The notes below the pieces were generated by a model. The model was not told the origin of the DNA and made no database searches. It worked only from the letters and a program-made list of their open reading frames with translations. A stretch of 28,492 nt of DNA, from positions 1 to 28,492 of the forward strand of contig VRVR01000019.1 in assembly GCA_009859145.1 (NCBI GenBank), written 5' to 3'. How positions within the stretch are numbered: position 1 is the stretch's first letter; every line of letters begins with the position of its first letter. The position numbers and the translations under genes are program-made. The stretch is from Andalucia godoyi And28. Taxonomy: Eukaryota; Protista; Jakobida. Shown here one piece after another: positions 186 through 26,963 of the stretch.

Positions 186-187
186 GA

Positions 188-2071: not shown

Positions 2072-2122
2072 TCGGAAGCAAAGACAATCAAAGGTGCAGC
2101 GAGCAAGGCACTTGACAAATTG

Positions 2123-5074: not shown

Positions 5075-5120
5075 ATGCTGTTTTAAAAAGTAGTGTATCA
5101 GGAACAACAACATAACAACG

Positions 5121-6521: not shown

Positions 6522-6551
6522 CCCGGGTTTCCCCCTATTCTGCGATTGCTG

Positions 6552-6557
6552 AATAAA
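6552..6557 (+). promoter_or_regulatory. Candidate AATAAA polyadenylation signal for the deaminase gene
   Basis: AATAAA about 30 nt downstream of the deaminase stop, inside the 56-nt gap between two convergent stops. Confidence 0.3.
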
Positions 6558-6577
6558 AACAGTGTAGATTACAAAGC

Positions 6578-9500
6578 TTAGAATGGATCGTCGGCAGCTT
6601 CTGTTGCCGATCGTGGCGACAGTAGGTTTGGATCCGTGTTTCCCTTTGGCCACAGCTCTCGAGGCTGAGTAAGGCCACCAAAAAGCTTCTGCATGCGAAG
6701 GACTTCTCCGATCATGGTCCACACGGGATATGCATAGGCCAGCACGTCTTGGGCAGATTGGACGAACTTATCCTCCATACCAAGCGAATGAAGACCCACA
6801 ATCACGCCTCGCAGCAAATCCGTGTACTCGGTGTTCTTTCGAAAATTCGCATCCAACACGCGGTCGATAACCCACACCGCACCCGAGTCGCCCGGAGCGG
6901 GTATATATCCCTTGGTCTTATCCTCACGTTTGCGACAAGCCTTGCAAGGAGGCGAAACAAAAGGATACAATTCCAGGCCCGGTGGATGATCGATATCATC
7001 TGCGCTGATGACTTGCAGAACGGCAAGAGTCGTCCCTGTCGTAATTCCTTTTTTGCAGCAAACTACTTTGCATCCGCGATCCTCTTGCAAGTACCGCAAG
7101 CCCCGTTGCAGCAACTCTGCAGCAGTTTCAGATGGCCAATAAGGTTCAGAAACCGTTTCTTGGGATTCAACGTCACGAATTTGGAACACAAACGGCTGGA
7201 TGAAATCGTGATACTCCATCGGGATAGGGATGAATGCAAAGTCGTGGATCAACTTATGAGATTTCACCGACGATGCTTGCACTTCGACAGTGTGTTCCAC
7301 GCCATACAGATGAACCTTTTGATCGGTCAGGCAGAAATGAAATGCGTCGGAAAGAGAGATGCAACACTGCGCAATAAGCACTTTTGAAGACTCGGCTTTG
7401 GCTTCTCGTGTTGGCGTAGATGAATTCACATTTCTCATCACCGAAAACACACGAGAAACGGCAGACGATAGCCCCAATATTCGATCCAAAGGGAGAAGAA
7501 CATGTCCAGCAGTGACTGCGTAGATATCGTTCTGCTCTTCACCCAACGACACAAAACCCCCCACCGACGCAATATCGGCCCCTGAATTAGCATCGATTCG
7601 GACACAATGCGGAAAATGATTGACGATGGATCCTCCAATCTCTCTCGAATTGTCTGCGCTATGAACAGCCTGTGGGACAAACTTTGCCGAAACCACGGGA
7701 ATATTGATGCCGAATCTCCCCGTCTTCGAGTAACTCATCAGTTCAATTCCATACAGCTCCTTAAAACTGACGCACATTGAATTCAACAGCGCTACGCCAG
7801 ACTCTTTCGCAATGAACGGAGTCAGACACTGGAGACACAGAGTTCCGTCTTTGTTGAAATCAAAGGAACGAACAAGAATGTCCGCATTACCGACTTTGAA
7901 ATAATGGCCATGCTCAATCAAAAAATCCTCAAGATAGGATACGTTTGTGATTAATGACGAAGGCCGAACTGTAAGAGATGAACCGTCATGAGCAACCAAC
8001 AAACGATCCGATGGGACGACGCCGGAATTCTCTTTTTCGAGCCCCAACATACGCTCGCGTAGTATGTAATCTTCATCAGTTGCGGATATGGACGGGATTC
8101 TGCGCAGTTCCTCGGCTGGCAAAAAATAGGAACGGTATTGTTCGAATCCCAAGTCCAGTTTCAGCAAATGCCGCAATAAAACGTACGAAGAATAAACCTT
8201 CTTGTGACTCGGACCGCGGAATGCCAATATCGAACGACCAAATCGGTGACACTTTTCCCAATCCGAGTCCAAAACTAGACAACCAGGTTTGATACGTTGC
8301 ATTGCTCGCTTCAAAGACGCCTCCCATTCCACCAGCGGCTCTTTAAAATCCAATAACTTCGAAAGAACTTCTGCTAAATTGTTGAGATCCGGAACAACAG
8401 ATTCCAGAGAAAACAACACCCTGAAGGACGGATCTGTAAACGGGTCCTCAATTTGATCTTGAAGAATTCGCGAAAAAGGAATGGATGGGGGTCTGAACAA
8501 CGCATCCATAAATCTCTGAACCCTAATCAGACGGGTTTCAGGACGATCAGCCTGAGGATCAGACTTGAATCTCTGTTGAACGGATTGGCGAGCGGTGACA
8601 ATGACATCGTCGATAACCTGCGCTACATGCAAAGACATCCCGAGATATGCGTCACTTGTAATCTCATCATCGAAATTTGGAGAGAAAACTACTCGTTCCC
8701 GAAACTGGGAAGATAACCATGTTTGAAGGGATGTAAAACCCTCTCGAGAAAATTCCTTATAATTCAAGACAACATTCTCGACCAAAGATGAGAGTTGATC
8801 GGAAGTTCCTCGAAACAGCATTTCCATAAATCCGGGCATTGCAAAGATGGCCGTCCAAGTTTTTTGAATGGAAGTCTCCGACGAAGGATCGTATTTCAAT
8901 ATTGTGGAGAAAATGTGTTCACAATGACTAACAAACAGGTTTTCCAACTTGGCGCATAAACGTGCTCTTGCACTGTTTTGCAATTCCATCAAAGAAGCAC
9001 GAAATTTGACATCTTTCTTGGAATCCAGCTTCTTGAACACCCGCATCAACGACTGCAACTTGGTGACAGCTCGCTCGCAGTACTCAAGAATCTCCCTTAA
9101 CCTCGGATTGAACGAAGAGTTTAGCGCACTCATCAGAGGCACCATACCAGCGACACCACGGATATGGTCGTCGTTCTCCTCAAGAAGTCGACGAACTCGA
9201 GCGAGAACAGACTTTGTGATAGCCCCTCCTTCGGACACCAGCTCTTTGTCTACAAGGTGAAATAGCGCATTCACAGTGCAAAACAAGCTTTCATCAAGCT
9301 GAACTCCGAGTCTGCGGCAAAACTCGGCTCTGAAATTCTGTTCCACCGGGTCAATGTCATTGTCAGGTACTTCTGAACGCTCCAGCACTTTGACGACAAC
9401 TAAATTCGCAAGTAAATCGGAACGATCTGGCCGTCGAAGGAACTCCACGAGCGATGAAATGTGAACATCGTCCGAAGACTGCGAATACTTCATGACAAAC

Positions 9501-10468
9501 GCCGCACGATGAACCGTACGAAGAACATTCGCAATCGCATAGTGGCCCAGAAAGTGCTTGTCTCCGGTACCAGGCATGTCAATCAGGCACATTCCATGAG
9601 GAACGAGTGCTCTGTCAAATCTCCCGCGCACCGTAATCTTTTGCAGGAACAACGCTTCGATAGGCACGTTTCTGGAATACTCGCTGTTCTCACCGCGCAC
9701 AAGCTCTGCAAGGACAGCAGTTACGGATTCAATGGCCAGCCCATCGCGGTACTTGTAAGCTCGTTGATGCTGGAAGACGTCGACTTGCCGCTGCAACTGC
9801 GGAAAAGTAGGTACTTCGCAGTCGTCGTCGCACAGCGATCCAAATACGACATCCTGCCAGGAATTGCCCAGAAGACGGCGCAGCAGACCCCGAAGATAAT
9901 CGGCATCGACATGGAAGTTCAGGATCGGCTTTCCATCTGCGTCCTGAAAGTCGGATTCTCCCCAGCTCTTCCAAGCCGACGTTTCAGAATATGCAGAACC
10001 ACGAATCTGTTTCTTAACATACTCGTTCAGCTCCTTGGTGAGAACGACACGAGCGGCCAAAAGCAAATCCTTCATGACTTGATCGACCGAGAAGAAATCG
10101 AGTTCGAGAAAGTACTTTTCCGAAACTTTCCCCTGCGAATCAAGGATTTCCTGCCGAAACAGTGCGACGGGTACGTGCGTGGTTGCCGACCGGTCGTCTG
10201 AGATTGGCAAGAGTTTCGGTTCACCAAACAGCGCGTTGAGCAGGAAGCTCTTTCCCGCATTCGTGATGCCGAAAAACGCAACACCGGCACTCTGTCCATT
10301 GAGAAGATTGTCGAGGGGGATGAGGACATCGCGGCGAAGTGAATTCGTGACGACTTCATCGTGACGCGTACAAGCCAAAATCTGCGGGAGCAGTTTGGAC
10401 AGGGACAGCAGCCGCGAAAAGGTATCTGACGCAGCCGAAGCCGGGCTCAGCATCGCTGGATCCGACAT
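6578..10468 (-). CDS. Dynamin-like GTPase fused to a C-terminal trypsin-like serine protease (1296 aa)
   Basis: N-terminal GITNAGKSFLLNALFG (G1), ATT (G2), LIDMPGTGD (G3) with the long G2-G3 insert typical of dynamin_N domains, then a helical region. C-terminal SVGGFV...YAVTAGHVL (His), HDFAFI (Asp), PGDSGAVW (Ser). Uninterrupted ATG-to-TAA ORF. Confidence 0.85.
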   Translation of the reverse strand: MSDPAMLSPASAASDTFSRLLSLSKLLPQILACTRHDEVVTNSLRRDVLIPLDNLLNGQSAGVAFFGITNAGKSFLLNALFGEPKLLPISDDRSATTHVPVALFRQEILDSQGKVSEKYFLELDFFSVDQVMKDLLLAARVVLTKELNEYVKKQIRGSAYSETSAWKSWGESDFQDADGKPILNFHVDADYLRGLLRRLLGNSWQDVVFGSLCDDDCEVPTFPQLQRQVDVFQHQRAYKYRDGLAIESVTAVLAELVRGENSEYSRNVPIEALFLQKITVRGRFDRALVPHGMCLIDMPGTGDKHFLGHYAIANVLRTVHRAAFVMKYSQSSDDVHISSLVEFLRRPDRSDLLANLVVVKVLERSEVPDNDIDPVEQNFRAEFCRRLGVQLDESLFCTVNALFHLVDKELVSEGGAITKSVLARVRRLLEENDDHIRGVAGMVPLMSALNSSFNPRLREILEYCERAVTKLQSLMRVFKKLDSKKDVKFRASLMELQNSARARLCAKLENLFVSHCEHIFSTILKYDPSSETSIQKTWTAIFAMPGFMEMLFRGTSDQLSSLVENVVLNYKEFSREGFTSLQTWLSSQFRERVVFSPNFDDEITSDAYLGMSLHVAQVIDDVIVTARQSVQQRFKSDPQADRPETRLIRVQRFMDALFRPPSIPFSRILQDQIEDPFTDPSFRVLFSLESVVPDLNNLAEVLSKLLDFKEPLVEWEASLKRAMQRIKPGCLVLDSDWEKCHRFGRSILAFRGPSHKKVYSSYVLLRHLLKLDLGFEQYRSYFLPAEELRRIPSISATDEDYILRERMLGLEKENSGVVPSDRLLVAHDGSSLTVRPSSLITNVSYLEDFLIEHGHYFKVGNADILVRSFDFNKDGTLCLQCLTPFIAKESGVALLNSMCVSFKELYGIELMSYSKTGRFGINIPVVSAKFVPQAVHSADNSREIGGSIVNHFPHCVRIDANSGADIASVGGFVSLGEEQNDIYAVTAGHVLLPLDRILGLSSAVSRVFSVMRNVNSSTPTREAKAESSKVLIAQCCISLSDAFHFCLTDQKVHLYGVEHTVEVQASSVKSHKLIHDFAFIPIPMEYHDFIQPFVFQIRDVESQETVSEPYWPSETAAELLQRGLRYLQEDRGCKVVCCKKGITTGTTLAVLQVISADDIDHPPGLELYPFVSPPCKACRKREDKTKGYIPAPGDSGAVWVIDRVLDANFRKNTEYTDLLRGVIVGLHSLGMEDKFVQSAQDVLAYAYPVWTMIGEVLRMQKLFGGLTQPRELWPKGNTDPNLLSPRSATEAADDPF

Positions 10469-10947
10469 GTTCGCAGATGGAGGAAAGAGGTAGCGGTACG
10501 AATTCGATGGCCAATGAAATCAAAGTGAAAGTGGTGGTTGGAAAGGTGACGGATAGTCAAAGATCTATCAACCTTGTGAAGAAGTTCTGGCCCGAGATTG
10601 CTCGGTGAAAATTGAGAGAGCATGACGGGAGGTTGTGGAAAGCGCATCATCAATTCGCGGAATTCAGACTTTTGAGTGAGCAGCCTGTGCAAGCAGACGC
10701 GGCAATCTGCAAACCAGATGAGGAAATCCTTGTCTTTGCAAACAAAAAATGCAATGAGCAGTCATCTTGCTGGAAAAGACTTTTGGTCGTGACTTGTGAC
10801 TCACAAAAAGCCCAGTGTGGAATCGGGGACACGCTGCTTTTGTCTGTCCTTTACTTCTCTCTCTTTTCAAGATCCACATTCCACGGATCTGACTTTTCTC
10901 ATTTGGCTTTGTAAGTTGACGTAGTGCATGTCTTGTGAAGCTTTGAA

Positions 10948-13161
10948 ATGTCTGCAGCGTCGTCTACTGCCTCACAAGTGGAGAGAGTGTTAACCGAGTT
11001 GCAGTCAGGAAGATTCCCTAATCTTCTTGTCTTTGCTAGCCGCTGCCGGAGTGTGTCCTCGCGGGAAATCCGCAAACTGCAGAATTCATGGAAGGGTACT
11101 CGAATTGACATGCCAGTATGGGTTATTCCGTTGTGTTGTGTTTACCAAGATACTGGAACAAGACCCTTGTGTCTGCGTTTCAATCATTAGAAGGGCTTCG
11201 GATGCGGAGACGTCGAATGTACGTATGAACACATGTGCATGGTTTGCGGCAGCCTCGACCACGGTATGCATAGCAAGCGCACTGATGGAACAATGCTACT
11301 GCAATGCGGAGAACATGCATTACTGAAACAACAGTTCGAATTGATGGAAAACAACGGTTTTCGTTTGGAACATATACTGGAAGCAATCAGATCTGAAAGA
11401 TTCGTTGCAATCTTTCGAGCCCCAACTTCTTCGCAGATGTCCCCTGCTCGACAAGTTAGTGCTTCTCCGACGATACGTCCGCCTTTATGCGCTACTGGTT
11501 CAACTGGATCAATTTCTTCACCATTGTCTATGACCAACTCTACGAACAATGTTGCCGCTTCAGAAATGAATTCATCCTCCAACATTATGCCACCGCCAAG
11601 AGATGGGGACATGAATGCCAAGCGCAGCGATGAGGACGTCGATGATCACGATGCACAGCCTTTTGTGTACTCCATGTCCCGTGGAGAGAATGACGTCTTT
11701 GAATTGCAGTTGAATATTACGTTCACTCGTGCAAATTGCATTGCCCACACAAATCTGTCGAAAGTTTGGCGTTGCAGTCTCACGTCACCATTGTTTTCTT
11801 CTCCGCGTCCCATGGCGATTAAAATGTGGGAACAATCTTTCACAGCAAAACGAGAACAAGTTGCGAAGGATCTTCAAAAATTGCAGCGAGAGATTATGTC
11901 AATTCGCAAGCTTTGTGAAGAAACTCCACATGTGGTACGGATTGAGAGCTCTCCCACAAAGCTGCGAATCGGACCGAACACATATTTTTGCCTTTTGATG
12001 GAACTTTGCAAGCAGCCTCTCAGTCAATATGTAGTCGATACCCACTCTCGGTCAACGATGGATCAGTTTGGCGGACTTGCAAACAGCTCACCCGATGTTC
12101 CTCGTCCCGACAATTCACCCTCCTTGCCTTCTCCATCGGTTCGTCTGCTCGATGACGCTCATGTTCGTTCGATCACCTCACAAATCCTGGCTGCAGTCGA
12201 TGCTTGTCACCGGGCACACATCTCTCACAGAGACATCAAACCTGACAATATTTTGGTGTCTTTTCAGCGAGCGGATGATGATCGGCCTCTCCTTAAACTG
12301 TGTGATTTTGGCTTTTCCAAGATCATTGACTGCCCCGGGACTCGTGGTGAAATGCAAACAGTTATTGGAACAGATTTGTACCGTGCTCCCGAGATTGATT
12401 TGAAGGGAAAATACGAAGTATCTGCGGATATGTGGTCCGTTGGGTGCGTTTTGTATTTTGTGTTGATGGGCGGCACTCATTTATTCGACCGACACCAAGA
12501 CGTTCTCGACGTTGCGAATACAAGTTCGCTGAGTGGAGATGGCCATTCACGTGGCGATGAAAAAGTCGTTGGTCTGCTGACCCGCCACATTGACATTCGC
12601 TTACAGGCTTCAGTGATGTTTGACTTGTTACGCCGCCTTCTGCGAATTGAGCCAACGTTGCGCATTCGCAGCTTCGAGGCTTGTAAACATCCTGCGACGT
12701 GGAGTTGGAAGCGCATGGTCAGTAACATTCGAGTGTTGGTTGATTGTTACAATGATAACGTACCGAGTGCGCTGCGCATTGTAGAACATGTTGAAAAACG
12801 GACTCCATCCGTGCTACATCATTGTGCTGGAGACTGGTTGAGCGAGTTTGATGACACTACAAAGTCAATTTTGACGTCGGTTTGGAAGAAGAATCCGAGG
12901 TTCCAACCTTCCACTCGAACAACAGTTTCCATATTGCTTCGACAAATCCGAAACATGGTTGTGCACATGTCGGAGTCGATGAACCAGTTGCCAGGGTTTT
13001 CTCCGGAAACGATTGCTCATGATCTCGGTCAACGTCTACTGCCCAGGTTCCCGCTGCTTATGCCGGCTATTTTCGATTCTCTTATGGACCCTGCTAACGA
13101 GCGCTTTGTTTCTCTCACTCCAGTTCCCGATGGATGGGAACTATCCTTGAAAAGTGAGTAG
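10948..13161 (+). CDS. Soluble Zn-finger - Ser/Thr kinase - KEN ribonuclease (IRE1/RNase L-like); core ORF 11233-13161, in-frame upstream part 10948-11190
   Basis: Kinase motifs MAIK, alphaC LQRE, HRDIKPDN, DFG, APE, DMWSVG. KEN-like tail HPATWSW...DW...LLRQIRNMVVH...RFPLL (compare IRE1 LLRAMRNKKHH). N-terminal CCCH + CxxCGSxxH. No obvious TM segment. One in-frame TAG at 11188-11190. Confidence 0.85.
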
Positions 13162-14135
13162 AAATATCATTGGTGGCTATGCTCCTTTCCACTTCGTTTG
13201 TTGTCTCAAAAATACCCTCGGTTGACCCCTTGTTTTCGTTTTTTATTTGCATTACCCGGTAAAACCAGGTTGGAAAACAATCGGATCCTTTTTTTTTGTT
13301 TGTTTTTTCCTATTTTTTCCTTTGAACCGTTGCAGTGGACAACACATATGCAAATACACTACTACATTCATTCCGCAAGTGGCACTTCCGGAGAGACATG
13401 ATCATTGAGACGACTCGGGAGACACGCGCGCCAGCACGAGAGATTTCCTGTCCTATATCTTCACGTTCATGATTCGTCAGCATGAGCATTTCGTCGAGTC
13501 TCGCACTCATTCAAAGCCGCTGCTGATCAAGAGATTCTCTCGGAGGACTAAAATGCAACCGTGGTGCGAACTGACAGGAACGTTAGCCATTCACTGCCCA
13601 CTCCTCAGTGGTTTCACTTCTGGAGAAACTTGCTGCTTGGCATTTTGGTAAATGATTGCCCAACGCGCCATCGGTTGTAACATCCATTTAAATGCAGAGA
13701 GGAAGAGCGAAAACGAACAAAACAATGACAAGGAATTCGATTTTGCTTCGACTGCCTGCAGAGGAGGTTTCCTCCAGCACAAGCAAGCATCTTGCACGCC
13801 TTCCTTGTCTAAGCAGGGACTGCATTAACGGTATAAGCAATTCTTCGTTTCCGGAGTTCCGTGATCTCTCCGTTTGTCTGCTGGGTCGCAAACCCCTTCC
13901 GCTGTCCCTGCGGGCTACCAGCTGCTTGAAACAAAGCCTGTCTCCATGTCCTGCCCCAGATACAGGGAGGCCGTTGCAATTCGTCGTCGATCGTGCATCA
14001 ATCGCAGCTTCCAACGGGGAACGATTGTTCTCTCCTCATTTCTCCAGTTTGCAAGCCATGCTGGCAACTCATTAAAATTTCTTCTTTGATGCTCATCACC
14101 TTCGATCTGCACCGTTAACTATTCAGAAGGTGGTC

Positions 14136-15131
14136 ATGATGAATGGATGTTTGGCTGAGATCACACTTGGATCATCCAGTCCCGGATCTCCAGTACCATC
14201 CGATCTCTACAGAATCCCGGCTGATATCTCGAATCTCCAACGATTGTGGGATGGTGCATTCAAGGAAACACCATGGATATTGAGACTTTTCCTTCGTATC
14301 ACGATGTTTTGGTGGAATAGATCGTCGTTCTGGTGGAGTTTGTCGTCGTTCTATGTTGAAATGTCGAGAAATGTCCACGGATTCATGGACGATGGGGCTG
14401 TGCATTCTTGCAGTTTGTGATTTATTGGGTATCAAGGGCAAGGCAATGACTGTCTGATTGCAGTCGGCATGACAGCGCATTTTGCCATGTACTGGTTTGC
14501 TAGTCTTCCGTGGGTCATGAAAGCTTTGTCTTTCTTCTGGTCTGTTCTAAGTCTGTGCCTTCTAATAATTGATTTCGGGAGGCGTCTTCGCGGGTCCTTG
14601 AAGTGTTTCGAAAAAAACTTCGAATTCCCGCCGGAACTAAAGATCGAATGGCACATTATGTCGAACACGGCAGATCGTTTGTCTAGAACTTGGTCTCCGT
14701 TGACATGTCTGACGTTCCTTGCGGTTTTCGTGATCTTACTCTTCAATTTGATTTCCATCCTCAAGAGCAATGCCGATATCTTCATCAATCTGGGGCTGAG
14801 CTTTCTCATTGCTGGAGGGATGATAGGTGCTCTTTTCGTATTAGCGATGCCGCACGCTATTGCAACGAGAGTGTTCGAGAATGTCGTCAATGCCAATGAC
14901 CTCAAGTTCATCGTTCAAGATGAAAAAAAGTTGACACAAAAAAAGCATGACAAGGCATTGAAGAAGCGTCAGGATCCCCTGCTGGAGGAAATCAGATCGT
15001 TCGCACAAAATCATCCCATCAGTCTGTCACTTGCAGGCTATTCCATGACGTTGAGAAAGGTGGCATCTATCCTTATCGGAACGTTAACACTGCTGATTTC
15101 CATATTGGCACTTCAGGGAGTGAAAGTTTGA
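14136..15131 (+). pseudogene. Degenerate multi-TM protein, paralog of 15587-16990 (GRL/7TMIC-like)
   Basis: Clear similarity to the minus-strand paralog (LPWVM...WS..SLC..IIDFG.RL; EWH....TA..LS.TW.PLTC.TFL; SLAG.S.TL..V..I..G.LTL..S.LALQG). In-frame TGA at 14418-14420 and an apparent internal deletion of the first TM helices. Confidence 0.75.
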
Positions 15132-15586: not shown

Positions 15587-16990
15587 TTATAGCCGTAGTC
15601 CTTGAAGAGCCAAGAAGGATACAAAGAGCGTTAATAAGCCCACAAAAATGGTCCCGACGCGTTTCAAGGTTATAGAATGTCCAGCAAGTGACATGAACAG
15701 AGGATTGTCTTTCAGAAGTCGTTTGACATCTTCAAGAGATTCGTCAACACTGCAGACATTCGATTTGAAGTCTGGCCCTAAATGACTCGGGCTGGAAGAT
15801 TTTGACGGGCATTGCTCGACATCCTTTGAAAGTAATTTGAAATGGGTATTGGATATTGCAGCCTCTCTTGCCCTTTCCGCTGTGGAATGGGGCAAGGCCA
15901 AGAGGAAAAGTGCCAGGATCATGCCAACAGCAATTATGGCACTCAGCCACAAGTCAAGAAGATTGTTCGGTCTGTTTTCCAAAGCAATGATCACATTGAG
16001 CAATAAGAATGCCGAACCTACCAAGAATGTAATGCACGTCAACGGAGCCCAGGTATAAGACAAATCCGACGCAGTTTTCAACAGAACATGCCATTCGGAA
16101 TTCAACTGCGAGAAAGCACTGCGTTCATGGGTGGAAATGGCCGTAGCGTCAAAAGAGCGTAATGCGTCTGTGAGGCGAGTTCCAAAATCGATGATAAACA
16201 TGCACAAAGAGAAAATGGACCAGATGAAACACATTGCTACCATCACCCAGGGCAGACCAACTAGCCAGTACATGAGAAAATAAAGCGTTACACGGGAAGG
16301 GATAACACAGTCCTTGTGATCTCCGTCGTACACAATGGCTCCGACGACCATGCCACCCATGATAATTAAAAAATGCCCAAGGAGAATGATATGTAGGCAT
16401 ATTCTGGTTATCCCCTCCGCACTACAAGCTCGAAGTTTTCTTTTTGAATCAAAAGTGGAATTGCGACTCATCATCGCGGCCATCTCCACGCGCCAGAACA
16501 ACGGGCTGCCGGTCAAACGAGCACCATACTTTTTGATCAGAGTATCATCATCCGTGAACTCTTTGGGAATCCGACAATAGAGCATCCACACCGGGAAAAA
16601 AACGGAAAATGTGGCTAAACAAACACACACACCACCAAACAACACGCCCAAATTGAACCATAAATATCCGCTCGTTGCTCCTTCCATGTTACAACCATAC
16701 ACCGGAACTATGTAGACCTGCATCAACCACACAACTCCAGTCCAGAATACCAGAAACAAAAACCTGCCAAGAGCCCACCACATCGACGAATCCACTCTGT
16801 TACCAGCGCCCTTCTTGAACGGACGATACCACCACAAGATGGCGATCCTCAAGTAGGAACGGAGCGACCAGGGCAGGTTGGAAAACACATTGTCCCACGT
16901 GTGCTCCAGAATGCCAGATGTGGTCTCTTTGCTGAAAGATCGACTGCTAGAACACGGAATAATCGAGGCCTGTTTTGTCTCGAGAGTCAT
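15587..16990 (-). CDS. Seven-TM membrane protein resembling gustatory-receptor-like / 7TMIC (DUF3537-like) ion channels
   Basis: 467 aa from ATG 16990. Seven hydrophobic segments by eye, a long TM4-TM5 loop ending EWHVLLKTASDLSYTWAPL, a short TM5-TM6 loop, and a terminal split helix MSLAGHSITLKRVGTIFVGLLTLFVSFLALQ. The CDS is well supported; the family call is tentative. Confidence 0.7.
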   Translation of the reverse strand: MTLETKQASIIPCSSSRSFSKETTSGILEHTWDNVFSNLPWSLRSYLRIAILWWYRPFKKGAGNRVDSSMWWALGRFLFLVFWTGVVWLMQVYIVPVYGCNMEGATSGYLWFNLGVLFGGVCVCLATFSVFFPVWMLYCRIPKEFTDDDTLIKKYGARLTGSPLFWRVEMAAMMSRNSTFDSKRKLRACSAEGITRICLHIILLGHFLIIMGGMVVGAIVYDGDHKDCVIPSRVTLYFLMYWLVGLPWVMVAMCFIWSIFSLCMFIIDFGTRLTDALRSFDATAISTHERSAFSQLNSEWHVLLKTASDLSYTWAPLTCITFLVGSAFLLLNVIIALENRPNNLLDLWLSAIIAVGMILALFLLALPHSTAERAREAAISNTHFKLLSKDVEQCPSKSSSPSHLGPDFKSNVCSVDESLEDVKRLLKDNPLFMSLAGHSITLKRVGTIFVGLLTLFVSFLALQGLRL

Positions 16991-17376
16991 TTGCCAAACA
17001 AGTGTTAAAAAGCACAATAACCGTGAGGAAATGAGGAGATTGTTGAGGAAAAGAGCTTGCAAACGTTGGTTGCCGACAGCAGAGACTGCCCCCTGGTATC
17101 GACAGCCTGACTTTTGGTCAATGCAGGGTCGCAGACTGGGATTTCCGGAGGTCTGTGATCCGCTTGTCGTCCGAGCTTCTGGGTCGAAGCAAACGGCCCT
17201 TCGGAAGTTTCGCTCAGTTGACGAATCTGGAACGTCGTGGGTGACAGCTGTGCAAGCAAACTGCGTTCCTCCTCGGAATAGGTGTTACACATTCGCCAGT
17301 CCCGCATTCCGCAAAAAAGGCCTTCAGTTTTCTCACTATTCTTACATGTTGCCCTCCGCGTTCGTTTCCATTTGCA

Positions 17377-18789: not shown

Positions 18790-21700
18790 CTATATAAAAA
18801 CAGGAAGTTCTAGAAGATCTGCCACTTCGCGTAAAACTTCCGGATACAGACGCAAGAACGCGCAGAATGCCTGAACCGGAGACTTCGAAGCTTGCGATTT
18901 CAGAACCATGGGATTCAAAAGGACGCGCCGCTTCCACAGTTCCACAGCCGCCTGTCGATCTCCCATTGCTATAACATGATCAGCAGTTCCGGTATCAAAC
19001 GAATTCAATGCACGCACAACAGCGATGAACACAGTGTCAAAATGATTGAAAAAGTACTTCAAGAATGGAGCAAGATTATTTTGCAATGCATCATTCAGTT
19101 GCTGTCTGGTCCACTCTTTCGGCGCTGCATCAGAGCGAGAGGTCGCTGCAGCCTTCGGTTCGGACTTCTGGTACTCATCAAACTGCGCCATTCTCTGCAG
19201 GAACGCAGGCTTCTGAGCGAGAGGAACGGATCTGGCATTTCCATGAGCGACGAAACCAAGTTGATTTTCATGTCCAAATTTCACCGACTGACCAAGCACG
19301 ACCATGGAACCAGCAGGAATGCCAGTGTCCATGCTCACCAACTTTTTGAAAAGATCGATAATGGGCAGTGGCGCAGCTTCCGCACAACGCCACAAGCGGA
19401 CCGCAAAAAACGGGCCGTTCACACCGCCCGGCATGATTGCAATGCGAACACGATGGCGACTACAATCATCGACCAACTCTATTTCTCGTTCTGCAATCGG
19501 AAACTCCGACGCCAGTGGGTCCACTTCATCTCCGATGCAGAGGACTTCGGTTGTCAGCTGAGCAGCAACATGCAGAAAACTGCAAAGTCGATAGAATACG
19601 TGAGGAGAGACAGTCGGAACTGACGGTACTTCTGACCCACGTCGGGTTTGAATTTGAATGGCCAATGAACAGCTTCTGAGCTGAGTGGAATCAATAGCTG
19701 CTTCGGAAAGATAATCCCTCACAACATTGCTCGTCCTCAGGATGTGTAGACGAGGAGTAAACAAGAAGAATGGAGGATGATCGGTGACGTGCATTTGCAC
19801 GACTCTAATCGGGATGAGAATGCCCATCAAGCAGAGCGTGGAGACCAAGCAATTCTTCTCTTCATCACACAAGCCGTCTTTGGACACTGGATCCACACAG
19901 AGGATGCGACGCACCTCATCTTCCTGTATCGCACCGATTCGCTGCCAAAGTGCATCGAAAAAAGATGAATTTGGTTGCAGGTACCCATTGGCAGACGAAC
20001 GCAGAAATCGATGACTGATCAGAACTGCACAACGTTGCACAAATTCAATAGGCCGAATGACAATCACTGCCTCCGTTTCAGGTACCGCTTCTGCTGCGCT
20101 TCCATTCATACAATTGCCAGAACAAAAGCCAAAAAACGACCCGGATTCAATGAGGGCTCTCAGCGCATCGCGGGCCTCGGCATCGGAACCAAGCTTTAGA
20201 GCAGGAACAACGTAGGAAAGAATCTCTTGATCGGATACCACGCTTCGTGCGCTCCATTCCTGCCGCTGAAGCACAAATGCTTCCAAAAAGAGGTATCGGA
20301 GTGGAACTGGACGGCTTGCAGAAACGAGGTCACCAAATTGTCGCAAAATGAACGTGGAAAAGCTCTTCATGAACTTCAATCGATCGTCATCATACATACC
20401 GCTACCCTCGAGATGCGGATCATTCTCCAGGACGTAGAACGGTCGATCGGGATGAACATCTGCATCACCGCGCGCTCTGCTAGGATTGTCCACTCCCACA
20501 TACACCTCCAAGTTGGCAAAACTCTCTCTGCATTTGAAGATACTGTCTCTGACAGCGTTGCCAACACGATCGACAGAAGAATGCGCCTTGAATTGGCTCC
20601 CTCGTGTGCCAGCAAGAATAACAACTGAACGCTGCGATGGCTGTGAACCCGCATTTGCGAGCATGCTTGAGATTCGCTGCAACCACGACAAGATGCACCG
20701 ATCGATCTCGGACGCAAGGCTGTCAGCTGAAACACTCGCCTTGGCGCACAAACTCAGCAAGTCAAACACCAGAACATACATGCTGGACGGAGCAAAAAAC
20801 AAGGGATCGAGACAGCGATACAAATCTTGACCAGCGAAATCAAATACAGAAATACAGCTTGATTGGATGTGCGAGGCTGCATTCCGAATCTCGGCAAGCG
20901 TGTCATCGATGCCGCCGTTCGAAGCAAGGGGCGACTCCCGGGCTGTCCTGTCCTGCCGTGAATCATCAGCCGAGCCTTCCACAGCATCTGGCATGATGGC
21001 GTTCTCAGAGTCTCGCATAACCGCCGAGAGTGAAGATGACGATGACAACGAGTGAGATTGAGAGACAGTGGAGTTGCGGGCCCTTGCAGCGGACCGCAGG
21101 AACAGCGATACTGCTCCAGCCGCAGCACCACGCTCCGATGAAGCATCCGTCCACGATCGACCATCCACGCCAACTGCAATTTCCATCATGTGAACGCCGC
21201 CAACTTCGGTGCTTTGCCGGTCTGCGTCGTCTGTTCCTTCTTGAGTATGGCAGAACTGCTGCTTGCCGACGCCGCGCAGCAGCTGGATGGTTGACGTTTT
21301 TCCAGCGCGGGTTTCTCCCACAAACAGAACTCGACGACGCGGCAGCTTTGCAGATACCGTGCCGAAATCCCAGGAAAGAATGAGGGTCTTGGAAGGAATC
21401 TTGTGCCGTCTCCGTGTTGGAGGAAGCTTGGAGAGCAACAAGCATGCAAGTTGCGCACGGATATCATTGTCAGAAAGTGAGTTGATCAACGAAATGCGGT
21501 GAGGCAGAGTGATACCCGGCAGAACTGCAGAACTGTCGACAATGTAGTCAAACGAGCGAACGAATACATCGTGCCCCTCTTCGCCCACTGTCTGCTCAAC
21601 GACAAGGTGAAGTCCAAAGGATGCTGATGGATCAGGAGGCAAGCGCAGCACATAGTTCAATGAGAAATGATGAACGGCATCTGAGGAATTGACAGTCATT

Positions 21701-22572
21701 CCCCCTGCAATTCCAATGCGATTCGCCGCTTTATCGTCTTTGGCAGATGCCATCTGACGTGCAATCGAAAAGCGCACCAATGATCTGGATAAATACCTGC
21801 AGATGGACTGCATGCGATGAGGAGTTAATGATAGACCAAGAGCAACTTCACTTAAAACTGAAGACTTGCGGTCTCTAATGAACTGTAACGGGTGGCTATC
21901 GGAATCATCAGTCTCGTCCGCCGTCATCAGACAGAAGTGTATTATTCGTAATCCGTCAAAGACGACTGGAACAGAATAGAACTCGCGGAGGAATAAACCT
22001 TCAGATGATAACAGCGTTGGATTTGGGAGCTCATCAAGACTCCCATGGACCGTAAGTACAGTGTGACCTCGTCTTGGGGACTCTGACAGTGCGTGCTGGA
22101 CAATTTGGAAAAAGGCAGGCAGAAAATAGGCAGTGTCCGATCCGAAAAACAAGACATCCCACTCTAGAGGTGCAAAACGTAAAGTCCAAATCATTTTGCA
22201 ATACAGCGAACGCCCAGGAAAGATCATCTCAGCATTCATAGTAACGCCATTCGACTGTACATTGAAGTTTCCGTCACTATCCAAAGTGACACATTCTGGA
22301 ACCGAGTGCGGAGAGAATGAAACAAGAAGAGGAATACCGACTGTCTCTGCCAACCATGGCATCTCTTCAAACGAGACATCAGGATTCCTACGACAGTATA
22401 TATCCAAAAGCACAACTCGGTGCGGCATCTCCTTCTTCCACAGTAGTAAGAAATCCAATGCGTCACCGAGGTTATCCTCTTCAGTTGAAATCACGCACAG
22501 CCTGTTCGTACCTGGGCCGCATGGAGTGAACACGAGACCTTTACTTGTGCCCCACTCCGGGAAATACGACAT
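18790..22572 (-). CDS. Roco-family Roc-COR GTPase with uncharacterised N-terminus and C-terminal CARD/death-fold-like domain
   Basis: VLFVGETRAGKTS (G1), STEVG (G2), VFDFAGQDLY...LFF...MYVLVFDL (Roc G3), WLQRI, VILAGT (G4), COR-like PVPLRY...LRALIESG...IRPIEFV. First ATG at 22572; the frame is open to about 22626 and a strong splice-acceptor-like tract lies just upstream, so the true start may be spliced. Confidence 0.85.
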   Translation of the reverse strand: MSYFPEWGTSKGLVFTPCGPGTNRLCVISTEEDNLGDALDFLLLWKKEMPHRVVLLDIYCRRNPDVSFEEMPWLAETVGIPLLVSFSPHSVPECVTLDSDGNFNVQSNGVTMNAEMIFPGRSLYCKMIWTLRFAPLEWDVLFFGSDTAYFLPAFFQIVQHALSESPRRGHTVLTVHGSLDELPNPTLLSSEGLFLREFYSVPVVFDGLRIIHFCLMTADETDDSDSHPLQFIRDRKSSVLSEVALGLSLTPHRMQSICRYLSRSLVRFSIARQMASAKDDKAANRIGIAGGMTVNSSDAVHHFSLNYVLRLPPDPSASFGLHLVVEQTVGEEGHDVFVRSFDYIVDSSAVLPGITLPHRISLINSLSDNDIRAQLACLLLSKLPPTRRRHKIPSKTLILSWDFGTVSAKLPRRRVLFVGETRAGKTSTIQLLRGVGKQQFCHTQEGTDDADRQSTEVGGVHMMEIAVGVDGRSWTDASSERGAAAGAVSLFLRSAARARNSTVSQSHSLSSSSSLSAVMRDSENAIMPDAVEGSADDSRQDRTARESPLASNGGIDDTLAEIRNAASHIQSSCISVFDFAGQDLYRCLDPLFFAPSSMYVLVFDLLSLCAKASVSADSLASEIDRCILSWLQRISSMLANAGSQPSQRSVVILAGTRGSQFKAHSSVDRVGNAVRDSIFKCRESFANLEVYVGVDNPSRARGDADVHPDRPFYVLENDPHLEGSGMYDDDRLKFMKSFSTFILRQFGDLVSASRPVPLRYLFLEAFVLQRQEWSARSVVSDQEILSYVVPALKLGSDAEARDALRALIESGSFFGFCSGNCMNGSAAEAVPETEAVIVIRPIEFVQRCAVLISHRFLRSSANGYLQPNSSFFDALWQRIGAIQEDEVRRILCVDPVSKDGLCDEEKNCLVSTLCLMGILIPIRVVQMHVTDHPPFFLFTPRLHILRTSNVVRDYLSEAAIDSTQLRSCSLAIQIQTRRGSEVPSVPTVSPHVFYRLCSFLHVAAQLTTEVLCIGDEVDPLASEFPIAEREIELVDDCSRHRVRIAIMPGGVNGPFFAVRLWRCAEAAPLPIIDLFKKLVSMDTGIPAGSMVVLGQSVKFGHENQLGFVAHGNARSVPLAQKPAFLQRMAQFDEYQKSEPKAAATSRSDAAPKEWTRQQLNDALQNNLAPFLKYFFNHFDTVFIAVVRALNSFDTGTADHVIAMGDRQAAVELWKRRVLLNPMVLKSQASKSPVQAFCAFLRLYPEVLREVADLLELPVFI

Positions 22573-22903
22573 TCCTCTTCTGCACAACTGTGTTGCAAAC
22601 AAGGAATAAAACAAAACGAAAAGATTCTACCAGAAAGAAGGTGAGGCAAAAATGCAAATGCTCCCCTGTCCGAACCCGATGACACATGTGGCTGACTTGA
22701 TGTGACAGACTGACATCTGGCGGAGGTGCTGAGCTGTCGTCATAGCAGATCCTCCATCAACGGCATCCCAACCTCTCAACACGGAGTCCATTCGCGAAAG
22801 TCCAGCCAGCCAGCGAATCGTTTGGGCGCCGCTGATTCTTTTTTTCGTCTTTTCCTGCTGCCCAGTTTTTCCTTTGGAGGCGAGCGTTCCCAACCATTTG
22901 TGA

Positions 22904-23644
22904 CTTTGTGCATCGCGCCCCGCCACGTCTTCTTCTTCGGCCTGGACGCGAAAGGAGCTGGAAACTGCGTTTGACGCGTACCTGCCCGCGTTCCTCGAGT
23001 ATTTTGTGCATCATCATGATTCTGCTTTCGTAGCAGCTGTTCACTACTTGCACACCATTGACCCTGGACAGTCGAATGCCGTGCTGGCAATGTCCGATCC
23101 AGAAGCTGCTGTGATGCGGTGGATGCAGAGGATCGTCATTTGTCCCCTGCATCCAGAGGCAGCGCCTCGTTTCTACGAATTTCTGTCTCGAAAGTCGGAG
23201 CTTTTGGCGGATGTCAGGGTCATGCTGTTTCCCTCCTCAAACACGCCCGTTCATACAACAAGCACCGGAACCACTGCTGCTCTCTCTGGAACTTCTGAAG
23301 TGCATGGAGGAGCATCAGGATCATCAACATCCAGCACACCAGTGAACCGCGTATTTACTCGCCGCGAGGTCACGTTTGAGCATGTGAATGCACCCGCGAT
23401 CAAGACAATTCTTGTCGTTGTGGCAAAGGACCATGAATGGGAATATGCAACTGGTATCGCTGACGATGTTGGGTGGAATGAGGGGAACCGAGGAACGGTT
23501 GGCGCTGGCGATGCCATGCGATACATCGAGTATTCATACAATGGATCAAGAATCGTCTTTGCTGCGGCGTACGCGATGTGCCAGCCGGCCGTGGACAAGT
23601 ATCACGCGCTTATCCACGAGTTTATTTCAACACACATAACGACG
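22904..23644 (+). CDS. N-terminal CARD/death-fold-like domain + Ser/Thr linker + short alpha/beta segment (possibly nucleoside phosphorylase-like); first part of a disrupted or spliced gene
   Basis: Frame open from 22904 (after TGA 22901). WTRKELETAF...WMQRIVICP aligns ungapped to the Roco C-terminus. No in-frame ATG before about 23090, so the start is unresolved. Protein-like character appears to shift to another frame near 23645. Confidence 0.7.
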
Positions 23645-23685
23645 GTAGGGAAAGAGAGCGGATGCACGAGCGGATGGAGCGCAAG

Positions 23686-24945
23686 ACCGGGCCAAATGCG
23701 TATCGTCTGTCGATTCCTGGCCGGTTTCACTCCATTTTTGACACAATCAACCAGCGGCTTCTTGGCGAGCTGCTCAACACCACCGATCCCAGTGCTGTTG
23801 GTGTCGAACACCTGCTGTTCGATGCGACGTGGTGTTACCAAACAGCGGTCGCCGATCTGCCGATCCGCATCGTCGACCAGGCCATCGTGCGGCCCCTTGG
23901 CGAGCTGTTCGCGAAGTTTCAGGAGATGCTGGTCATGGATCCCAGTTGCAACCGTGCGTCGACATGCACGCTGCGGCACTGGATTACCGAAGCTTCTGAA
24001 ATGCTGCTGCGCTTCATTGAGCTGCTGGGCAACGTTCGTGATCGTCGAGTCCACCTGGATCACTGCTCCAGTCCACGTCTTGGCACGCTGTCGTCAGACC
24101 TCGTGGTGGCGGGACGAAGCAGCGGTGACCACGTTTTCGGTTGCCTGCAGTCTCTGCTGGTATTGCTCGACGCACCTTGCCTTGCTGACCTCCGTCCACG
24201 AGCCAGCAGTCTCTTGGCTGACGATGTTGTTCGGCTTTGCGACACCATTCGCAAGGCGCACCGCGCGTTGCTCACATTTACGAAGCGACCTGTGAGCGAG
24301 CATGATTCTGGGTCTCCAGCGCTGTCGACATTGCCATCGACGGCGTCCTCCGTGATAAGCGCTGTCCGACATCGATCGAAAAAAAGGCGGCAGGGCTCGC
24401 AAGATCTGGTGACCGTCCAGTCTGCGTTTGACACGCTTCTCCCGTTCTTCAATCTGTACGACGACGATGCGATGCTGGCCAGCGTGGCGTCCATCATGTC
24501 CATTGCCAAGATGCTCGACACAGAGATCACCGTCCTGGGCGACGCGGCGGTGATGACCACAACGATCATGGACGGGACGGGAACGCATTCGTACGGCGGC
24601 AAGGACGTGGCGTATCGCGGGCCTGTCTTTTGCCAGCAGGTGTTTCCGCGTCTCCTCGCACTGCTGAAGCGCCGGCCGCTCGACGAAGTGCGTTCACGTT
24701 TCGCGATTATCCTTGGCGTTTGTAGCGGTCTCTCGTATCGCGATCACTACTTGATGTCTATTGCGAACGAATTGCTGGCGGTTGCTGGCGGAAACACATT
24801 TGCGCCGTTTGTCAACTCGTTCGCGCGAATCCTCTTCAATTTGTACAAGCCTATGTGCAAGCCGTACGTTGGATGGGTCGATCACCCGTTGTGCTCGCAG
24901 CGGTTCATCACTTCAATGACGGGTCTCCCGGGATCCAACATCTAA
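23686..24945 (+). CDS. Predominantly helical protein segment, unknown function (probable middle part of the 22904-26963 gene)
   Basis: Long ORF (23578-24945) with Leu/Ala-rich, protein-like composition. In the same frame as the following ORF and separated from it by a single TAA. Confidence 0.6.
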   Translation, partial: TGPNAYRLSIPGRFHSIFDTINQRLLGELLNTTDPSAVGVEHLLFDATWCYQTAVADLPIRIVDQAIVRPLGELFAKFQEMLVMDPSCNRASTCTLRHWITEASEMLLRFIELLGNVRDRRVHLDHCSSPRLGTLSSDLVVAGRSSGDHVFGCLQSLLVLLDAPCLADLRPRASSLLADDVVRLCDTIRKAHRALLTFTKRPVSEHDSGSPALSTLPSTASSVISAVRHRSKKRRQGSQDLVTVQSAFDTLLPFFNLYDDDAMLASVASIMSIAKMLDTEITVLGDAAVMTTTIMDGTGTHSYGGKDVAYRGPVFCQQVFPRLLALLKRRPLDEVRSRFAIILGVCSGLSYRDHYLMSIANELLAVAGGNTFAPFVNSFARILFNLYKPMCKPYVGWVDHPLCSQRFITSMTGLPGSNI

Positions 24946-24987
24946 CAAACACTTCTTCTGCTCCGCACAGCGCATCTGGCAGCCGTT

Positions 24988-26963
24988 ATGGCGGTGATGC
25001 GTGTCCTCTCTTCGATCGCGATCCTCGAGCCGATCGCACTTGTTCCCTACCGTGCTTTCTTTGGTGGACTCTTGTTCTCGGCGAGCCTTCCTCCCGCCGC
25101 CGCCGATTCGTTGTGCGTTGTCTGCACAGCGATCGGCAAGACCTGCCTCGACAACGCGACGTACTTTGTTCGCACTGCACTGACTGCTCTGAAGCATGGT
25201 ACACCGGTCACGAACGGCCTGATGCAATTGCGGTCGGGTGTTGTATCGATATGCTCCAGCCTCGTCAGCACATACCCGACCGTCCTGCGTCCCGCGACCA
25301 TGGAGGACGCACTTGGTAACCGGTCGTCTGTCGTCGTCTTCAAATCGCTGACACGGAATGATTTTGTGCTTCTACCGCTGCCCGAGCTCGAGGGCGTGGA
25401 CTTGGCGCCGCAACTGTCGTTCGTCCTCATCGCGAATGGAGACTCTGTGGATGCGGTGGAGTTCGATGCCGTGATCGTGCTTCAGGAGTTGCTGCGGGAT
25501 CCCGTGGAGGCTGTGCGCAGCCAAGCCAAGGATTTGCTGGACACCGTTGTGGCGGGGAAGCCGGTGAACTCGCATCCAGTTGAGCTTGCCATCCGCGATG
25601 CCATGGTCGAGGAGCGGCTCACCACAATGCAAAAGATGTTGGAGGGGGGTTTGATGGCGTCATGCAGCGAGATGGTCGAGATGCGAACGGCGATCGAACT
25701 GATTGTCGGACAAGTGGATGCCGAGCGTGTGGCACACCAGTCGCTCGCTGACGAGGTCGGACAGGTGAAGGAGCGTGTTGCCGAAATGGCGATCGACTTG
25801 GCGCAAGTGCAGAGCGATGTCAACGAACTTGATGCGCAGCAACTGCAGCAAGAAGACATTCGTGAGCTGCGCGGGATCCTCGAATCGCAGCTCTCGGATC
25901 TCCGCAAGCAAGTGGGCGAGTTTGTCCGCCGCGTGCCGGTGCCGCGCCGCATCGTTGTGCGTGATGCGAATGTTCTCCGCGTGTCCGTCGAGCTTCATTT
26001 CTCTTGCGACTGCTCATGCAACGGCCGTGCTGGTCACGGCGACGATACCGCAGCTGATTTTCAGACCTCCGCGAGTGTTGCTTGTTTGGCGACGACGCAG
26101 TGCCGCTCTTTGCAGTGCGGACCGCGAACTGGCGCAAATGGATCAAGGTCAGCGTGGCGTCCCTCTCGCTTGCTGTCTCGCTTGCGACGGCATCGGCCGC
26201 TCATGCCATGACTTCCATTGCGAATATCTACCAGAAGCTCAAGGCGCCAAGTGACGGCGAGTTTGCAAGCATGTGCCGTCAGCTGCAAGAAAATCATGGC
26301 GGTGCACTGATGACCTCGGTCGAGCAAGACGAACTTCTAGGGTCGCTGCGTGCTGCTGGGTTCTTCCAAACGTTTTCGTGGGACCCGGAGATGATGCAAT
26401 GGTGCTGCGCCTCGTGTCGGTCGCACGTGCCTCGCATCCTTGAGCGCGAGGCTCGCAGCAAGATGTTTGTGTCTCTGGCCGAGCAGCTGCGTGTGGTTCA
26501 AGTGCGGCACGCTGCGTTGCAGTTGGATCTGTCGACGCTGGATCACCGCCTACCATGCGAGGGATCGATAACGAAGCAGGGACACAAAGTCAAGAACTGG
26601 AAACAGCGGGTCGCACACCTCGATGTGGACCATTTCTGGTATGCGACTGCGGTGGGACAGCCGCCGATCCGCGTCGTCCCTGTCGCCTCCATTTCTTGCA
26701 TCGCGCCGTATGATCGTCATTCCAACGAGGATTTGAAACTGAACCTGCAGAATCAGAATGAAGACCTCGCGCTTTATCTCGAAACACAAGGCAACGACAA
26801 GTGGTCGTTGCTGTTTGTCGTGGATTCGGAGGCCGAAAGGCAGAAATGGACGACCGCGCTGTCGGATGCGAAGCGCCGACCACTGCTCGTGGTCGATGTG
26901 AGTCGGGTCCGCGATGAAATGACGGCTGTCGAGCAACGGATGCTGGAGGCCGATCAGACTTGA
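24988..26963 (+). CDS. Coiled coil + Cys/Trp-containing domain + C-terminal PH domain (two ORFs joined by a frameshift or short intron near 26075-26115)
   Basis: Heptad-rich segment (VGQVKERVAEMAIDLAQVQSDVNEL), then LHFSCDC...WRKWIKV...WCCASC, then a PH signature GSITKQGHKVKNWKQR...FWY...DSEAERQKWTTALS. Confidence 0.75.

Follow-up and report, generated by a model that had tools for sequence, protein, structure and literature searches.

A small all-helical domain on Roc GTPases and effector-type proteins of Andalucia godoyi, a candidate homotypic adaptor present in an intact gene and in the probable remnant of a neighbouring gene

The DNA analyzed here, called the window, is contig VRVR01000019.1 of the Andalucia godoyi And28 genome assembly (GCA_009859145.1), positions 1 to 28,492. 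A. godoyi is a free-living jakobid (Discoba); its genome is compact, with mostly intronless genes, and was annotated with the use of RNA-seq (PMC7050145). In the window an intact gene for a Roc-family GTPase (minus strand) stands head to head with a shorter coding frame (plus strand). The C-terminus of the former and the N-terminus of the latter are copies of the same ~110-residue, non-enzymatic, all-helical domain, referred to as X. We lean, with reserve, to the reading that X is a homotypic adaptor between Roc switches and effectors, and that the window pair is the product of a block duplication, the Roc-X gene being intact and the X-effector gene a relic. What is claimed as new is a CARD-like adaptor principle, known elsewhere, in the Roc GTPases of A. 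godoyi, and this claim is partly supported; no paper on the X/Roc system of this organism was found in published full text.

The Roc gene spans positions 18790-22572 (minus strand; stop codon at 18790-18792). Its product, 1260 aa when read from the first ATG, is identical to a protein of a EukProt-derived collection (P0001). The first X copy is the C-terminal tail of this protein (aa 1142-1260; 18793-19149, minus strand), as delimited by BLASTP, tblastn and an X profile, positions 1-119 of which match the tail with an E-value of 1.5e-61. The second copy resides at 22925-23239 on the plus strand, was located by tblastn with the A. godoyi protein ANDGO_07231 (P0011), and has ACG as first codon (22925-22927). 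In a single BLASTP comparison the two copies share 33 of 80 residues (E 3e-19). When the whole Roc protein was compared by tblastn with the remaining window, residues 1143-1254 matched positions 22922-23227 (37.5% identity over 112 aa, E 2.4e-14); this is the sole significant match, the runner-up having an E-value of 0.13. The sequence-only reading had aligned the end of the Roc protein with its divergent neighbour, and the coordinates, the frames and the 68-aa gapless block quoted there were all recovered; the similarity reported to resume after a short gap is also found, the second block being part of one and the same alignment. The shared segment, put at ~105 aa, is about 115 aa long (Roc aa 1142-1260). 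Chance or compositional artefact as the origin of the similarity has a negligible probability, being ruled out by the BLASTP E-value, by the single significant tblastn match at this place, and by the X profile, which recovers five further A. godoyi proteins with E-values of 1e-10 to 1e-36 among 1.84e9 proteins. Identity between the copies at the three codon positions is 0.49, 0.76 and 0.46, the mark of a long divergence with selection acting on the protein fold, and not of repeated DNA.

The spacer separating the divergent genes, defined by sequence and translation from the Roc ATG (22572) to the first homologous plus-strand codon (22925), measures 352 bp (22573-22924). Head-to-head closeness had been correctly noticed, at a distance given as about 330 bp. 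The spacer features a TGA in frame with the plus-strand copy (22901-22903) and lacks a usable in-frame ATG; past the TGA the plus-strand frame reads ...PATSSSSAWTRKELETAFDAYLPAFLEYF.... Homology extends, as had been suspected, upstream of the second open reading frame (ORF) in the ORF track, whose start at 23006 is a GTG, an artefact of an ORF list based on the bacterial code.

X had been thought to be private to the pair, and this does not hold. A profile built from three sequences, searched against 1.84 billion representative proteins, gave seven matches, six being A. godoyi proteins and one a 766-aa repeat protein (P0016, from ENA), discarded as a false match due to low complexity. In 8 loci of the A. 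godoyi genome, to which X appears to be restricted as far as HMMER detects, there are at least 8 full-length copies, together with a single fragment of half a domain. The window Roc protein and ANDGO_07277 (P0002) have the architecture Roc-X, ANDGO_07311 (P0013) is Kelch-Roc-X, and in ANDGO_01445 (P0014) a Kelch-Roc-X array is followed by a domain of 341 aa. ANDGO_07231 (405 aa) is made up by X and ~300 additional residues, ANDGO_07253 (P0012) by two X in tandem, the second copy being divergent, and ANDGO_08394 (P0015) is a 103-aa fragment of a Roc tail. X is C-terminal in the window Roc protein, in ANDGO_07277 and in ANDGO_07311, N-terminal in ANDGO_07231, in ANDGO_07253 and in the window plus-strand copy, and sits in ANDGO_01445 at the junction of GTPase module and effector. 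A hidden Markov model search for more copies had been proposed, and it is on further Roc and Kelch-Roc proteins, on small proteins and on one Roc-X-nucleosidase fusion that they were found. X has no match among Pfam, NCBIfam-type or PDB sequence profiles (all 8 copies were scanned against Pfam-A, and the X profile against PDB sequences, both at E <= 10); malate synthase G was matched weakly, in two short pieces (E 0.007), which we put down to chance.

The X copies in the window are a few percent more diverged from the family than their counterparts in ANDGO_07277 and ANDGO_07231. Unique changes number 7 in the Roc-side copy vs. 4 in its paralogue, 10 in the plus-strand copy vs. 3; these counts hint that the whole window module evolves faster, beyond the broken gene.

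The label "Roc-COR protein" had been attached to the minus-strand product, and its first half is borne out. The Roc domain (aa ~415-700; 20473-21330, minus strand) is identified by motifs, by a profile, and by Pfam (PF08477, 30.1 bits vs. a cut-off of 27). The P-loop GETRAGKT (G1) is encoded at 21295-21318, the G3 motif DFAGQ at 20827-20841 and a G4-like LAGTRGS at 20596-20616, all on the minus strand, G1 and G3 being separated by a low-complexity insert of ~140 aa. A profile of the four Roc paralogues matches the LRRK2 Roc domain in PDB (E 3.6e-6, over the G3 segment only). The ~440 aa which follow (19150-20472) are conserved with the Kelch-Roc paralogues, and such a region is found in all four paralogues. 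No profile or PDB sequence match to COR was obtained for these ~440 aa, for which reason the COR half of the label is unverified, and only the Roc part detectable. ANDGO_07277, likewise 1260 aa long and 72% identical to the window protein, is its paralogue, and the only homologue retrieved with it from a collection of 5.8 billion proteins. The Roc-X gene of the window is intact.

The same does not apply to the plus-strand copy, which, compared with ANDGO_07231, is probably a recently inactivated, 3'-truncated paralogue, and not a working effector gene. Residues 2-235 (of 405) of ANDGO_07231 align to 22928-23650 with 71% identity and no stop or frameshift (tblastn, E 1.5e-107); over X the identity is 76%. 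Past X, on the same strand, come a Ser/Thr/Gly/Ala-rich linker (23240-23344, from alignments), as in ANDGO_07231 and ANDGO_01445, and the N-terminal part (102 of ~270 aa) of an effector-like domain of the ANDGO_07231 type (23345-23650, from tblastn and alignments). Where ANDGO_07231 has its initiator ATG, the window has the ACG at 22925-22927 (TSSSSAW vs. MSSSSAW), seven codons past the in-frame TGA; the next in-frame ATG is found at 23090, past helix 3 of X. An upstream exon and an intron supplying the ATG were considered and rejected, as the methionine of ANDGO_07231 aligns exactly with the ACG and the spacer offers no ATG that could be joined and no ORF beyond one of 17 codons; the idea is further disfavoured by the mostly intronless nature of A. 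godoyi genes (PMC7050145).

At the other end homology breaks off abruptly at 23650, half-way through the effector domain and within a motif, between FKPTHVTTVG and CCAG, Gly235 of 405 being the last residue. At this junction the GC content rises from 0.528 to 0.579-0.598, and coding potential moves to another frame. Residues 236-405 of ANDGO_07231 left no trace in the window in tblastn searches with residues 231-405 and with the C-terminus of ANDGO_01445 (E <= 50, word size 2). A remainder of the effector in another frame or place of the window is rejected, these searches returning noise only and ANDGO_07231 and P0006 being dissimilar. P0006 is an annotated gene in a different frame (23662-24945, plus strand; 427 aa, exact protein in the collection), which starts 12 nt past the breakpoint, lies outside the module and marks its end; it has no Pfam or PADLOC match and no similarity to ANDGO_07231.

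The pair might instead be a working sensor-effector module, the plus-strand gene being translated from the near-cognate ACG at 22925 into X plus a shortened or novel C-terminal part, and its product recruited by the neighbouring Roc-X protein. The frame is indeed open from 22904 for 463 codons, with coding-like codon usage up to ~23600, and 241 codons are homologous to ANDGO_07231, uninterrupted by stop or frameshift. The ACG has a purine at -3 (context GCC ACG U), and the head-to-head layout with a 352-bp spacer would suit co-regulation. ACG may act as a weak start codon in eukaryotes. Yet the paralogue has ATG at precisely this codon, the frame scores as non-coding after 23650, where an annotated gene runs across it in a different frame, and the effector lacks its C-terminal half, including a DME/EME-type motif present in both ANDGO_07231 and ANDGO_01445. 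In addition, the plus-strand copy has accumulated more unique substitutions than its paralogue in a relative-rate count over X (10 vs. 3, chi2 3.8, marginal), and its ORF, in the one form looked for (from the first in-frame ATG, 23090), is absent from the source proteome, whose annotation drew on RNA-seq (PMC7050145). We find a working module distinctly unlikely. The idea of a paired sensor-effector module consequently survives as an adaptor-type architecture at the family level, while ACG, truncation and absence from the proteome speak against the functionality of this particular pair. The sequence-only reading had itself considered that the second copy could be a dead duplicate, which comes near to the picture seen in the plus-strand copy and does not apply to the X family overall. 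In terms of annotation, the reading of the plus-strand copy as a relic places an unannotated, start-less gene remnant beside an intact receptor gene.

The likely source of the remnant can be traced in the proteome. ANDGO_07231 and ANDGO_07277 are consecutive EukProt entries (P004784 and P004785), the X-X and a Kelch-Roc-X protein are entries P004796 and P004798, and the Roc-tail fragment ANDGO_08394 and the protein ANDGO_08361 (P0010) are entries P005494 and P005496. The window gene at 14469-15131 has a close relative in ANDGO_08361, so that the pair of ANDGO_08394 and ANDGO_08361 mirrors the gene order of the window. The nearness of the indices of these related genes suggests that file order follows genome order, and, the indices being consecutive, ANDGO_07231 and ANDGO_07277 probably adjoin as an intact pair elsewhere in the genome. 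An identity of 72% between the Roc proteins and of 71% between the X-effector copies fits a block duplication of the pair. Several window ORFs correspond exactly to EukProt proteins, and one falls in the same cluster (at least 90%) as ANDGO_08361, which marks the window as nuclear DNA of A. godoyi.

ANDGO_08394, annotated as a "gene" of 103 aa, is 78% identical to residues ~1081-1179 of the window Roc protein and ends in the middle of X. It is two proteome indices away from ANDGO_08361, relative of the gene at 14469-15131; given this closeness, a third, more heavily decayed copy of the segment seems to exist.

The nature of the effectors is suggested by the 341-aa C-terminal domain of ANDGO_01445. 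Among PADLOC profiles it matches PDC-M60C (E 4e-13) and the CBASS "Effector, PN-superfamily" (E 3e-5), in NCBIfam an MTA/SAH nucleosidase (E 1e-3), in Pfam PNP_UDP_1 (E 2e-3, under the gathering cut-off), and in PDB the nucleosidase MTAN, with both motifs in the right order. The four libraries are concordant, though the matches stay below curated cut-offs, and on these profile matches we regard the domain as an enzyme domain of the PNP superfamily, a sort that bacterial defence systems employ as effector. ANDGO_07231 shares with ANDGO_01445 only a motif of 24 columns, FKPTHVTTVGCCAG vs. FKPSHVLVSGVCAG (hhalign probability 21%). When the effector parts of ANDGO_07231 and the window copy were compared with the libraries, a uL29m match (E 0.004) was judged spurious.

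The fold of X was predicted with AlphaFold2. The model of the first copy, obtained from the eight-copy alignment, has a predicted local distance difference test score (pLDDT) of 84.8 and a predicted TM-score (pTM) of 0.78; a model from only three sequences is weak (pLDDT 63). Helices span residues 15-24, 26-35, 37-47, 53-61, 65-77, (80-84), 91-101 and 103-113, the short one at 80-84 sitting in a loop specific to the Roc-tail subgroup, and form a bundle of 7 helices if the first is counted as broken. Foldseek searches of both models against 350,542 PDB chains returned nothing at E <= 0.001. Their best PDB matches are nevertheless CARDs (TM-scores of 0.31-0.49 on query length and 0.35-0.61 on target length, E 1.4-5.3, root-mean-square deviation 4-7 A). 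With the better model, the NLRC4 CARD (6mks) ranks first (E 1.4, TM 0.59 on target and 0.47 on query), the ARC CARD (4uz0) second (E 4.2, TM 0.58 on target), and the FADD death domain (3ezq) seventh (E 8.6, TM 0.40 on target). With the weaker one, first is again the NLRC4 CARD (6mks; E 1.4, TM on target 0.61), followed by CED-4/CED-3 (8jol; E 1.7, 0.41), Apaf-1 (3ygs; E 3.0, 0.52) and Apaf-1/caspase-9 (5wve; E 3.5, 0.52) CARDs, the MAVS CARD being ninth (8wkw; E 5.3, 0.35). The viral fold library BFVD yielded noise only (TM <= 0.30, which is chance level). An all-helical CARD or death fold had been proposed: X is all-helical, and CARDs are the top PDB matches of both models, but with Foldseek E-values above 1 and no sequence-profile link. 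A CARD-like death fold is a reasonable yet unproven reading, to which the models are suggestive only.

Split and fused architectures in the X family match the principle of homotypic effector-associated domains, or death-like adaptors, and X may act as a coupling adaptor of this type. On switching or oligomerization of a Roc-family GTPase, the X at its C-terminal end would bind the X with which a small effector-type protein begins, and concentrate or activate that effector. Because the fused relative ANDGO_01445 carries a PNP-superfamily nucleosidase as putative effector, the likely output would be cleavage of nucleotides or nucleosides in a defence or cell-death setting. The window pair would have arisen by block duplication of a divergent pair of the ANDGO_07231/ANDGO_07277 type; the X-effector gene would then have decayed, the initiator ATG changing to ACG and the last 170 codons being replaced at 23650 by unrelated, GC-richer sequence. 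The window Roc-X protein, if signalling at all, would need X partners encoded elsewhere (ANDGO_07231, ANDGO_07253).

X could also have no role as interaction adaptor and be a tail that serves the structure or regulation of a fast-evolving Roc family, having reached other genes through duplication and the shuffling of exons or domains. Segmental and inverted duplication, in a region rich in paralogues and decaying, would then have produced the head-to-head layout as a side effect. Duplicated and truncated genes fill the window, among them tail-to-tail membrane-protein paralogues, one of which is truncated, a dynamin-like gene has a paralogue at least 90% identical, a Roc-tail fragment gene is found elsewhere in the genome, and the adjacent X copies, only 33-40% identical, are not mutual closest relatives. 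Simple fission of a fused gene, however, would not put X on both products; X is always found at a protein terminus or at the junction of GTPase module and effector, and there is an X-X protein that stands by itself. Between copies otherwise saturated, strong conservation of codon position 2 shows long-term selection on the X fold in both contexts, and the best structural matches are CARDs, which are dedicated homotypic adaptors. A mere tail is in our judgement unlikely.

Several observations weigh against the adaptor reading, or against parts of it. In bacterial systems with effector-associated domains (EADs) copies on adjacent genes are closest relatives, whereas the adjacent window copies share 33-40% identity, less than the 47-53% between the effector-side X and those of the Kelch-Roc proteins; this would mean promiscuous or trans-locus pairing, or argue against an adaptor role. 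Pfam, NCBIfam, PADLOC and PDB yielded no significant match to the effector part of either ANDGO_07231 or the window copy, which is presumed to be PNP-like from the 24-column motif mentioned above. Every Foldseek E-value for X exceeds 1, small helical bundles can reach TM-scores of ~0.5-0.6 in the absence of homology, and no profile of CARD, death domain (DD, Death), DED or PYD matches any X copy in the Pfam-A and PDB sequence scans. The adjacency of ANDGO_07231 and ANDGO_07277 is deduced from file order and not from coordinates. The plus-strand copy, finally, retains an unbroken 249-codon frame with good codon usage, so that either its inactivation was recent, or weak initiation at ACG still occurs.

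The adaptor reading has a stronger form, in which A. godoyi possesses its own genuine death-fold (CARD-like) system, with Roc and Kelch-Roc sensors that recruit and activate, by homotypic assembly of X, effectors of the nucleosidase type as well as X-X proteins as bridging adaptors. We hold this form to be rather doubtful. If true, it would represent an independent eukaryotic counterpart of the bacterial EAD/bDLD conflict systems and of animal CARD signalosomes, and the window a module caught decaying, in keeping with the birth-and-death evolution of immune loci.

Other parts of the window show signs of decay and duplication as well. Downstream of the module two plus-strand genes of the source proteome, P0006 (23662-24945) and P0007 (24988-26211), lie in the same frame, with nothing but a TAA and 14 codons in between. 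The last part of P0007 is overlapped, in a different frame, by an ORF with a PH domain (26082-26963, plus strand; Pfam PH, E 1e-6), which in the form tested (from the ATG at 26208) is absent from the source proteome. The region 23662-26963 has the look of a single larger gene that a nonsense mutation and a frameshift have disrupted, or of a set of mis-modelled genes; its GC content is 0.57-0.60, vs. ~0.48-0.51 in the rest of the window.

A second inverted pair of paralogues, arranged tail to tail, is found at 14130-15131 (plus strand) and 15587-17062 (minus strand). The gene at 14469-15131 encodes a membrane protein of 220 aa, which matches with 40% identity (E 6e-56) the C-terminal half of the product of 15587-17062, a multi-pass membrane protein of 491 aa; neither has a Pfam family. 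A short ORF just upstream (14130-14420) resembles, in another frame, the N-terminal part of the 491-aa protein, which suggests another decayed copy. Positions 1-13161 are rich in large NTPase and signalling genes. One of the products, truncated by the edge of the window, has an SF1-helicase C-terminal domain (AAA_12); a second, of 983 aa, contains three AAA+ modules; a third is a dynamin/MMR_HSR1-like GTPase of 1296 aa, to which P0004 (1291 aa) is a paralogue with at least 90% identity; and a fourth, of 642 aa, is a protein kinase that continues into a long C-terminal extension. This gene content is reminiscent of conflict- or immunity-type loci.

Homotypic adaptors that join NTPase switches to death or immune effectors are known in animals (death fold), fungi (amyloid motifs) and multicellular bacteria (EADs and bDLDs). 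Should the adaptor reading be true, an identical wiring logic would have arisen, or persisted, in a deep-branching unicellular eukaryote, built on a Roc GTPase instead of a STAND ATPase; Roc GTPases would be linked to nucleosidase-type effectors, and Roco proteins would gain a concrete candidate output mechanism. The divergent layout of the window pair resembles that of the head-to-head paired NLRs of plants, in which both genes are NLRs; plant NLR pairs are not known to share a private adaptor domain.

The ROCO genes of brown algae, proposed immune receptors, resemble the A. godoyi family as Roc GTPases, there Roc-COR, expanded and diversified in a non-animal eukaryote, but vary in LRR/TPR sensor exons, and an adaptor shared with a neighbouring effector is not reported for them (PMC11378527). 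In DAPK1, an animal Roco protein, as in the window Roc protein, the Roc module is followed by a small helical interaction domain near the C-terminus; the order in DAPK1 is ROC-COR, then death domain (PMC4917528), COR having no profile match in the window protein. DAPK1 differs in having kinase and ankyrin modules and a recognizable Pfam Death domain, to which X has no detectable sequence similarity, and has no adjacent partner gene with a shared domain. Fungal pairs of the NWD2/HET-S type are like the window pair in that an adjacent NTPase receptor and effector share a short private element which transmits activation, and like the X family in having relatives with fused architectures; the fungal element is, however, an amyloid-forming motif of ~21 aa located at the N-terminus of the NLR, a STAND NTPase, and at the C-terminus of the effector, whereas X is a folded helical domain of ~110 aa (PMC3321046, PMC4344463).

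The adaptors of metazoan CARD and death-fold systems (Apaf-1/caspase-9, NLRC4, MAVS, CED-4/CED-3) are the best structural matches of X, are comparable in size and helix count, feature a similar break in the first long helix, and, as X does, terminate an NTPase switch and occupy the N-terminal end of an effector. They are set apart by Foldseek E-values above 1, by root-mean-square deviations of 4-5 A and by the lack of a sequence-profile relationship; the X switch is a Roc GTPase and not a STAND ATPase, and the putative X effector is nucleosidase-like and not a caspase.

EAD1-11 and bDLD1-3 belong to bacterial NTPase-centred conflict systems (Kaur, Burroughs, Iyer, Aravind; PMC7159879, PMC8195603). 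They differ from X in host, the jakobid being a eukaryote, in gene organization, the A. godoyi genes being monocistronic and divergent, with no operon, in the core, which is here a Roc GTPase often accompanied by Kelch, and in that adjacent X copies are not the most similar pair; X has no Pfam sequence match. EADs are recognized as small non-enzymatic terminal domains, with copies on a core NTPase and on an effector encoded by an adjacent gene, with fusions, and with lineage-specific paralogues (PMC7159879). X is likewise small, all-helical as most EADs and bDLDs are, non-enzymatic and located at termini. One copy is on the core NTPase and another on a neighbouring-gene effector, the window Roc-X gene and the X-effector remnant being 352 bp apart, head to head. 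Core and effector are fused in a relative, ANDGO_01445 being a Kelch-Roc-X-nucleosidase, with the last domain of which ANDGO_07231 and the window copy have, in their effector parts, only the motif match in common. As in EAD and bDLD systems, finally, X paralogues are lineage-specific, and PNP-superfamily enzymes are among the domains linked to them.

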